A stretch of DNA of 64,000 nt from Nageia nagi (taxonomy: Eukaryota; Plantae; Pinophyta): the NCBI GenBank assembly GCA_050084985.1, contig JBITNC010000002.1, positions 1 through 64,000 on the forward strand, written 5' to 3'. Position 1 is the first letter of the stretch. Each line of letters begins with the position of its first letter. This document shows, piece by piece, positions 43,915 to 45,982 of the stretch. The notes below the pieces were generated by a model. The model searched no databases, had not been told where the DNA came from, and worked only from the letters and a program-made list of their open reading frames with translations. Made by a program: the position numbers and the translations under genes.

Positions 43915-44680
43915 TCGGATATTTTACTCACTTCGGAATGACGTCAGCGCTTCCGAGACCCGGTTCCATTTAAAACAGCAGTTCCGGATATAACTCATTT
44001 CGGAATGATGTCAGCGCTTCCCGGGCCCGCTTCCAGTTAAAACTATGCATTCCAGTTAAAACTATGCACTTCAGTTTTTACCCGTGACGTCATTCTGGGA
44101 TGCTTTGCTAGTTCCGGAACACCTTGTTTCCGGAACGCCTGGTTTCCGGAACGCCTTTTTTCCGGAGAGCTGACTTCCGGAGAGCTGACTTCCGGAACAC
44201 TGTTTCTTCCGAAATGCTGTACTTCCGGAACCCCTTGATTCTATCAACTGACTCTTTTTTGTCAGTGCCAACACGTTTTTTGTATTAAGTGGGCATACGG
44301 TTGTCGGTGCCTACGCGGTTCTGAGTTGGTATGAGCTTTAATGAGCTTTAATGAGCTTTAATTAAGAGGGCATACGGTTGTCGGTGCCTACGCGGTTCTG
44401 AGTTGTAATGAGCTTTAATGAGCTTTAATGAGTTGTGGGTTTCAAGAAACCGTAACCCTTTTTAGGGTTTTTCGTTGTTCTTGTATAAATGTAAGGTTAT
44501 GAACGAGTTTTTCTCATAGAGTGCAACTGATGAGGAGTAAATCTCCGAAACCGGTCTTGCACAGCTCTTTGAGAAGTAATTATAGAAATTTCCTTGAATT
44601 TTTTCTATGATATTGTTCATTTTCCTTACATCTTTTTTGGAAGCTGCCAAGTGTTTTTCTTAATATTTTAAGTAACCCTA
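43915..44680 (+). mobile_element. Solo, 5'-truncated pLTR of subfamily C
   Basis: Homologous to ~49215-49945; capped by telomeric repeats. Confidence 0.88.
44521..44562 (+). ncRNA. Type I hammerhead ribozyme
   Basis: Intact core. Confidence 0.92.
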
Positions 44681-45982
44681 ATTTTTTAAGTAACCCTAAT
44701 TTTTTAAGTAACCCTAATTTTTTAAGTAACCTTAATTTTTTAAGTAACCCTAATTTTTTAAGTAACCTTAATTTTTTAAGTAACCCTAATTTTTTAAGTA
44801 ACCCTAATTTTTTAATTTTTTAAGTAACCCTAATTTTTTAAGTAACCTTAATTTTTTAAGTAACCCTAATTTTTTAAGTAACCCTAATTTTTTAAGTAAC
44901 CCTAATTTTTTAAGTAACCCTAATTTTTTAAGTAACCCTAATTTTTTAATTTTTTAAGTAACCCTAATTTTTTAAGTAACCTTAATTTTTTAAGTAACCC
45001 TAATTTTTTAAGTAACCCTAATTTTTTAATTTTTTAAGTAACCCTAATTTTTTAAGTAACCCTAATTTTTTAAGTAACCCTAATTTTTTAAGTAACCCTA
45101 ATTTTTAAGTAACCCTAATTTTTTAAGTAACCTTAATTTTTTAAGTAACCCTAATTTTTTAAGTAACCCTAATTTTTTAAGTAACCCTAATTTCTTAATT
45201 TTTTAAGTAACCCTAATTTTTTAAGTAACCTTAATTTTTTAAGTAACCCTAATTTTTTAAGTAACCCTAATTTTTTAAGTAACCCTAATTTCTTAATTTT
45301 TTAAGTAACCCTAATTTTTTAAGTAACCCTAATTTTTTAAGTAACCCTAATTTTTTAAGTAACCCTAATTTTTTAAGTAACCTTAATTTTTTAAGTAACC
45401 CTAATTTTTTAAGTAACCCTAATTTTTTAAGTAACCCTAATTTTTTAAGTAACCCTAATTTTTTAATTTTTTAAGTAACCCTAATTTTTTAAGTAACCCT
45501 AATTTTTTAAGTAACCCTAATTTTTTAAGTAACCTTAATTTTTTAAGTAACCCTAATTTTTTAAGTAACCCTAATTTTTTAAGTAACCTAATTCTTAATT
45601 TTTTAAGTAACCCTAATTTTTTAAGTAACCCTAATTTTTTAAGTAACCCTAATTTTTTAAGTAACCCTAATTTTTTAAGTAACCTTAATTTTTTAAGTAA
45701 CCTTAATTTTTTAAGTAACCTTAATTTTTTAAGTAACCTTAATTTTTTAAGTAACCCTTAATTTTTTAAGTAACCTAATTTTTAAGTAACCCTAATTTTT
45801 TAAGTAACCCTAATTTTTTAAGTAACCCTAATTTTTTAAGTAACCCTAATTTTTTAAGTAACCCTAATTTTTTAAGTAACCCTAATTTTTTAAGTAACCT
45901 AATTTTTTAATATTAATTTAGTAACCCTAATTTTCTTAATTTTTAAGTAACCCTAATTTCTTCAATTTTTAAGTAACCCTAA
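44661..45982 (+). repeat. 18-bp array (AAGTAACCCTAATTTTTT)n with many variant units
   Basis: Read directly; clean ACCCTAA junction to telomeric DNA. Confidence 0.96.

Follow-up and report, generated by a model that had tools for sequence, protein, structure and literature searches.

Recurrent flank-matching variant units in a telomere-side repeat array of a putative Penelope-like element from Nageia nagi

Background

What can the aberrant units of a tandem repeat tell about the way in which the repeat was made? This question is raised by a stretch of 64,000 nucleotides from Nageia nagi (NCBI GenBank assembly GCA_050084985.1, contig JBITNC010000002.1, positions 1 to 64,000 of the forward strand), referred to below as the window. 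An 18-nt array lying there between the end of a retroelement copy and a telomere tract contains units that deviate from the standard in a few ways. An earlier note on this DNA read them as signatures of read-through at a template boundary, and held that every unit had been copied afresh from the template, as in telomerase boundary bypass, rather than amplified by unequal crossover.

In telomerase, TERT works on an RNA whose template spans about 1.5 repeats and is delimited by a template-boundary helix, the subject, reportedly, of the type of work represented by Tzfati 2000 and Chen and Greider 2003. We are aware of no retroelement for which repeat addition from a short internal template has been demonstrated. 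The enzymes of Penelope-like elements form the sister group of TERT (PMC8557442), and endonuclease-less elements of this kind that attach to telomeres are already known (PMC8557442, PMC6431247). Plant cases in the literature covered come from Selaginella only (PMC12477314).

Organization of the element and its surroundings

As seen in Table 1, the window is made up of retroelement copies arranged head to tail, all on the + strand, with plant telomere repeats between them. These repeats read CCCTAAA on the + strand, and the chromosome end should therefore lie to the left of the window. The reverse transcriptase ORF at 10276-12393 has 346 relatives, the closest being those of Cryptomeria (60% identity), Ginkgo and Selaginella (42%), while more distant matches are animal proteins that combine RVT_1 with GIY-YIG, the Penelope-like architecture. 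The GIY-YIG endonuclease domain (PF01541) was absent in a Pfam scan of ten ORFs, and the closest relatives are also without it. The terminal repeat carries a minimal type-I hammerhead motif whose match to HH9 is full-length; it is composed of CUGAUGAG, stem II, CGAAAC and the palindromic helix III ACCGGU, with the cut predicted after C44556. Of the 11 copies, 9 retain an intact core. The other two, at 49760-49830 and 32268-32340, have a single core substitution each (CTCATGAG and CTCTGAAAC), which fits decay after insertion. Judged from its sequence, the element is a telomere-attaching, endonuclease-less Penelope-like element of the Athena/Coprina type.

The leader, with its terminal motif and 21-nt flank unit U0, occurs 11 times in the window, and U0 contains the 5' copy of a 9-nt repeat as well as the bases that are matched by variant units. 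The flank reads AAGTGTTTTTCTTAATTTTTT in 9 of the 11 copies. The exceptions are a private T>A in the copy adjoining the 44670-45970 array and an 8-nt duplication in the copy at 4255. The latter lies in the flank unit of a 3' copy (4255-4283), and the exact duplication is found in none of the 113 units of the array belonging to that copy.

Several further arrangements were observed at the borders between arrays and other DNA. A 17-mer array at about 5709-6540 has a telomere tract on either side and no adjoining element, and the 17-mer units adjoining telomere repeats at 5370-5720 and 6520-6580 are hybrids in which CCCTAAA replaces CCCTAA. At 13996-14349, the TTACCC array stops exactly after the T run and abuts a partial 353-bp satellite unit (starting GGGTTAAACG), and this satellite fragment in turn ends in telomere repeats. 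At this joint (14013/14014) the array begins precisely where the downstream repeat ends. The arrangement resembles what would be left by a switch of templates, from a satellite RNA at its 5' end to the template of the element.

Table 1. Coordinates of the features described in the text (positions in the window)
Feature	Position	Strand	Remarks
Telomere tract bounding the solo pseudo-LTR on the left	43756-43914		TRF, sequence read
Solo terminal repeat as a whole	43915-44669	+	
Upstream part, solo pseudo-LTR	43915..44508	+	TTCCGGAAC-type and TAATGAGCTT repeats; TRF, sequence read
Minimal type-I hammerhead ribozyme motif	44509..44583	+	Rfam HH9, 25.3 bits, E=7e-4, below gathering score
Leader end	44639..44669	+	GGAAGCTGCC plus 21-nt flank unit U0
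5' strand of the candidate template-enclosing helix	44646-44654	+	In leader end, near the array
18-mer array	44670..45970	+	About 68 units of AAGTAACCCTAATTTTTT; unit-by-unit parsing, TRF
Exact C-type 26-mers	45179-45204 and 45277-45302	+	
Degenerate C-type unit	45581..45604	+	CC, TTCTT
Four consecutive CCT units, then a CCCTTAA unit and a 16-mer	45677..45783	+	
Disordered telomere-proximal units	45892..45970	+	Two of them C-type
Plant telomere repeats CCCTAAA	45971..46118	+	About 20 units; seamless joint to last array unit
Reference 5' copy	32417..32481	+	Same family as 44670-45970; helix 5' strand, U0, single unit, second 9-nt repeat
Helix 3' strand in reference 5' copy	32468-32477	+	ORF1 ATG at 32473
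Helix loci	32420-32477, 8109-8166, 15629-15684, 25770-25825, 51606-51664, 61964-62023		
Sister array	37220..38705	+	Same family as 44670-45970; 81 units; comparison array
TTACCC-family array	12884..14013	+	57 units; joined at 14013/14014 to the partial satellite unit

Single units in 5' copies and arrays in 3' copies

The number of units differs sharply according to where the leader stands. In all four 5' copies, which precede ORF1, the leader has exactly one unit behind it; the second 9-nt repeat, TAATTTTT(T), comes next and lies 11 nt before the ATG. In all seven 3' copies the leader runs into an array of 4 to about 114 units, beyond which most copies continue into CCCTAAA tracts, one of them via the satellite fragment. 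Every AAGTAACCCTAATTTTTT unit includes an 8-nt match to the plant telomere repeat. In each of the four 5' copies the core stands between two copies of the 9-nt direct repeat, amounting to a candidate template of 1.5 units, and analogous layouts with a repeat-flanked core exist in two further families.

The core of the unit (TACCC, TTACCC or TAACCC) is a family trait and co-varies with diagnostic substitutions in the leader. Within each family the core of the single 5' unit is identical to that of all array units, barring a few that are damaged by indels. This is a correlation; it would require that the arrays were at some stage resynthesized from a single unit. In a divergent family that also bears a hammerhead, a different, 17-nt unit, TAATCCTAAAATTTTAT, is present once at the 5' copy (51620-51650) and three times at the 3' copy (61515-61585). 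The DNA following the latter (61500-61600) is AT-rich and not made of telomere repeats.

A candidate helix of 8 bp (GCC.AGUGU with ACAC..UGGC) closes a loop around the single-unit template, ending 6 nt before the 9-nt repeat, and its 3' strand overlaps the start of ORF1. When the main families and two divergent ones were compared, the helix was 100% paired in five distinct sequences, with three compensatory pairs and no one-sided change, in what are three independent lineages only. Slid controls were paired at 20-42%. The minimum-energy fold of the whole leader was not better than that of shuffled sequences (z=-0.6).

Variant units and their match to the flank

Unit-by-unit parsing of the array at 44670-45970 yielded 43 standard 18-mers among the roughly 68 units, and the non-standard units fall into few classes. 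The largest comprises 12 units with CCT in place of CCC, starting at 44724, 44760, 44840, 44974, 45125, 45223, 45375, 45527, 45677, 45695, 45713 and 45731. Four units carry an 8-nt duplication (44796, 44930, 45010 and 45447). Five C-type units have a C within the T run (TTCTT context); two of them are exact 26-mers, which lie in the repeated string 0-0-C-0-CCT / 0-0-C-0 (45179..45302), and three are degenerate (45581, about 45918 and 45945). A few further units differ by 1-2 nt in length.

The string TTCTTAATTTTT is found at 45192, 45290, 45592 and 45933, and elsewhere only in 10 of the 11 leader flanks, the exception being the copy at 44649, which reads TTAATATTTT. The earlier note had placed units bearing TTTTC, the bases just upstream of the template, at the right coordinates; its reading of TTTTC throughout needs correction, as the run is TTTC in the units at 45179, 45277 and 45945, TTC in one unit and TTTTC in one.

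The recurrence of the CCT and 8-nt classes in other arrays of the window, also claimed in that note, is borne out by counting. CCT units number 3 of 57 in 12884-14000, 1 of 81 in 37220-38705 and 2 of 5 in 49935-50036, and the corresponding figures for the 8-nt class are 12 of 57, 4 of 81 and 1 of 5. A TTCTTAA joint was also found in the 37220 array, among the disordered units at its telomere side. Since the CCT and 8-nt classes exist in two families with different unit cores, each must have arisen at least twice.

When the 18-mer families are taken together (205 units, about 3,700 nt), the third-C C>T, seen 18 times, is the sole substitution in units of standard length. All other variation consists of an 8-nt insertion at one common joint or of changes in homopolymer length. 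Only 1 of 54 single changes to the standard unit, the C>T observed, makes its right-anchored flank match longer (11 nt instead of 9), and only 1 of 78 single changes to the duplication unit, the T>C observed, does the same (14 nt instead of 10). The joint probability of two flank-extending changes is 2e-4 if all changes are treated as equal and 2e-3 if transitions only are considered. The aberrant units are non-random, as the earlier note had stated. The classes are few and recurrent, stand in register with the flank and are limited to the point where a copying enzyme would translocate. Bases of the helix appear in no variant unit.

A hotspot of methylation or deamination at the third C was considered as the source of the CCT units and rejected. 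CCTTAAA is present in 0 of 875 canonical telomere units across the window, and in a local comparison the array has 12 of 66 such units where the two bracketing telomere tracts have 0 of 42 (p=0.003). The recurrent flank-matching units are not accounted for by simple mutation.

Order of variants and probable turnover within arrays

The arrangement of the variants in the 44670-45970 array is less simple than their composition. The 8-nt and CCT classes alternate strictly over 14 successive non-standard units between 44670 and 45680 (permutation p=0.005, in a test picked after the data had been viewed), and this alternation is explained by none of the models tested. Exact multi-unit blocks, on the other hand, are no commoner than in shuffles, as judged by the longest block and the k-mer diversity of the unit string (p=0.77), and TRF reported no period above 26. 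Even so, the classes do not follow one another at random, and one 5-unit block is duplicated. In the 12884 and 37220 arrays, unit order looks random. Jumping back from the flank on a multi-unit template, whether DNA or RNA, was also tried and rejected, since it fits only 2 of 9 non-empty blocks.

Frequencies are likewise uneven. CCT units make up 12 of 66 (18%) in 44670-45970 but 1 of 81 (1.2%) in the sister array with the same template, a 15-fold difference (p=6e-4). In the 17-mer family, whose flank is the same, they make up 0 of 126. Furthermore, the arrays of three copies show about 0.06% other substitutions, compared to 1.15% private differences in their 261-nt leaders (p=2e-5). Fewer random substitutions in the arrays than in their own leaders suggest that the arrays were homogenized once inserted, unless source copies that are not in view had passed on the differences in the leaders.

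It can be seen that order and frequency of the variants make this array no clean record of independent copying cycles. The proposal that each unit was freshly copied, without amplification, conflicts with the alternation, the run of four CCT units, the duplicated 5-unit block, the gap in CCT frequency and the deficit of substitutions, and independence of the units is unsupported. As the test for block repeats was negative (p=0.77), amplification is suggested but not proven. The duplication of blocks and the homogeneity of the array are probably due to DNA-level turnover after insertion, by slippage and unequal exchange.

The edges of the arrays differ from each other, the leader side being clean in 6 of 7 arrays and the telomere side mostly disordered. 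Outside the assembly, short-read contigs from two organisms and from air metagenomes carry the hammerhead-leader stretch and unit types of 16, 17 and 18 nt, in a comparison that covered 44510-44765, that is, the flank and the first five array units. These contigs reach depths of hundreds to thousands and also represent the 5' junction, indicating that the family is abundant beyond the present assembly. Metagenome scans for further arrays gave 0 matches, and a literature search with the unit sequence gave no match.

Proposed origin of the arrays

In our judgement there is an even chance that the array was produced at the start site of an endonuclease-less Penelope-like element attaching to chromosome ends. 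What the sequence shows directly is the anatomy, the match to the flank, the covariation in the helix and the contrast of 5' with 3' copies. We infer that the enzyme of the element itself was the builder, through the following cycle. In the element RNA, a loop 11 nt before ORF1, closed by the 8-bp helix, would present in order the flank, the 9-nt repeat (a), AAGTAACCC and the 9-nt repeat (b). The seed AACCCUAA would pair with the G-strand end of a telomere, and the reverse transcriptase would copy as far as the end of repeat (a). The nascent DNA end would then pair again with repeat (b), and recurrence of the cycle would add an 18-nt unit at each round, until the enzyme escaped into the leader and ran on through the hammerhead and the remainder of the element. 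The disordered units next to the telomere tract would, in that case, be the first ones synthesized.

All classes of variants may originate at the translocation step of this cycle. CCT units would result from an overshoot by 2 nt (U, C) followed by in-register pairing with one internal mismatch. C-type units would require a longer overshoot and pairing in the U run with a G-U pair, leaving a variable number of T before the C, and 8-nt duplication units may reflect a slip between two UUAA sites 8 nt apart. Variant kinds that match the flank, recur and are few are what boundary read-through on a single-unit template predicts. Such an origin for the variant units is plausible, and we hold it to be about as likely true as false. 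However, a DNA polymerase slipping beside the flank could generate the same flank-matching joints.

Another reading is an ordinary minisatellite, in which a seed of 1.5 or a few units is expanded by slippage and unequal sister-chromatid exchange, the variants are amplified mutations or flank slips, and the enzyme has no part. The alternating classes, the CCT run and the repeated 5-unit block in 44670-45970 are all of a kind that such expansion would leave, as are the 15-fold difference in CCT frequency between sister arrays, the wide range of array lengths, and arrays free of random substitutions beside leaders with about 1% private differences. The same seed, however, was never expanded in 5' copies (0 of 4, and 0 of 1 in a second family) and was expanded in all 3' copies. 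Both flank-matching changes recur across arrays and families with no other substitution in the sequence compared, exact multi-unit blocks stay at the level of shuffles, disorder is confined to telomere-side edges instead of affecting both, and the poor fit of jump-back on a multi-unit template counts against this explanation too. Overall, it is considered unlikely, although far from negligible.

Inheritance through RNA is less probable still, and we regard it as decidedly doubtful. Here transcripts would read through a 3' array into the telomere repeats, a telomere end would prime anywhere in this transcribed tail, and the parental array would be copied with slips, so that most variants were inherited. 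Differences in variant frequency between arrays would then be traits of lineages, the joints to telomere repeats are indeed seamless, and the stand-alone array could be a copy truncated within its array. Nevertheless, no order of variants is common to the leader-side ends of the three arrays that belong to one family, and all units carry the core of their family in the very form of the single 5' unit. On tandem transcripts, moreover, a known Penelope-like enzyme has its start point at the pLTR-ORF junction (PMC11167929), where the Nageia element has a single unit. Errors of sequencing or assembly in a low-complexity array are very improbable as the source of the variants. Changes of 1 nt in the T6 and C3 runs, as in the 17-mers and 16-mers, are typical of long-read errors. 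The CCT, 8-nt and C-type classes, however, are not such 1-nt homopolymer variants, which could be sequencing errors; insertions of 8 nt and position-specific C>T changes are atypical of platform errors, the same classes recur in four arrays, and short-read contigs from other samples contain the leader, the units and the 5' junction.

Comparison with known systems

Similar to elements of the Athena/Coprina type, the Nageia element forms head-to-tail chains between telomere repeats, is 5'-truncated by telomere tracts, lacks an endonuclease, has a hammerhead motif in its terminal repeat and has 3' ends complementary to the G strand (PMC8557442, PMC6431247). The known elements, however, have short, plain reverse-complement telomere repeats directly after the hammerhead. 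In the Nageia element, a leader of about 100 nt follows the hammerhead, and beyond it a composite repeat of 17-18 nt, of which only 8 nt match the telomere, extends for up to 2 kb. Unlike in the known elements, this repeat is present once in the 5' copy, within the helix-closed loop.

The closest biochemical comparison is PAc of Anolis (Frangieh et al. 2024), for which the start of reverse transcription in vitro lies within the RNA, close to the junction of pLTR and ORF and some 90-120 nt 3' of the site cut by the hammerhead (PMC11167929). Because of this internal start, PAc insertions end in the pLTR plus a short piece of the next copy (PMC11167929). The start position corresponds to that of the template loop in the Nageia element. 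PAc differs in that its target is cut by GIY-YIG, its start site has no homology to the primer, and no repeat addition is reported (PMC11167929), whereas the Nageia start site has a telomere seed that is flanked by direct repeats and reiterated.

Several features recall telomerase: the candidate 1.5-unit template, in which 9-nt repeats border a core of 9 nt, a candidate helix that lies a few nucleotides to its 5' side, products that are tandem repeats on the G strand, and variant repeats with bases from beyond the putative boundary. In contrast to telomerase, the RNA would be a coding retroelement transcript and not a dedicated non-coding RNA, the unit of 17-18 nt is mostly A/T, and addition would putatively end with read-through into a whole element. 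Slippage at 3'-tail repeats is said to have been described in LINEs (eel UnaL2) by Kajikawa and Okada 2002. Bacterial DRT2 and DRT10 are reported to make tandem-repeat cDNA as well (PMC12039810, PMC12632851). These systems and UnaL2 are alike in that, as synthesis begins, a reverse transcriptase shifts the nascent DNA back along a short repeated template, giving a variable number of units. In the LINE case, however, the repeat is the 3'-terminal microsatellite of the RNA, and in the DRT case the enzyme circles a non-coding RNA as a defence; telomere ends are involved in neither.

Conclusions

The Nageia arrays may be the work of a living retroelement whose reverse transcriptase performs telomerase-style processive repeat addition from a helix-bounded, 1.5-unit template in its coding RNA, writing kilobase arrays at chromosome ends and leaving read-through errors behind. 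This is put forward tentatively, as a reading that we rate somewhat below an even chance. If the arrays are ordinary minisatellites, the finding shrinks to an unusual 3' tail on a known kind of element. In either case, telomere-attaching Penelope-like elements are extended to a seed-plant-type genome. The locus offers a concrete candidate, with a defined template, a candidate boundary helix and family-specific template variants that match their products, and its error classes predict the outcome to be expected from an in vitro assay. If the reading is true, processive repeat addition by this element would represent a functional intermediate between Penelope-like elements and telomerase.
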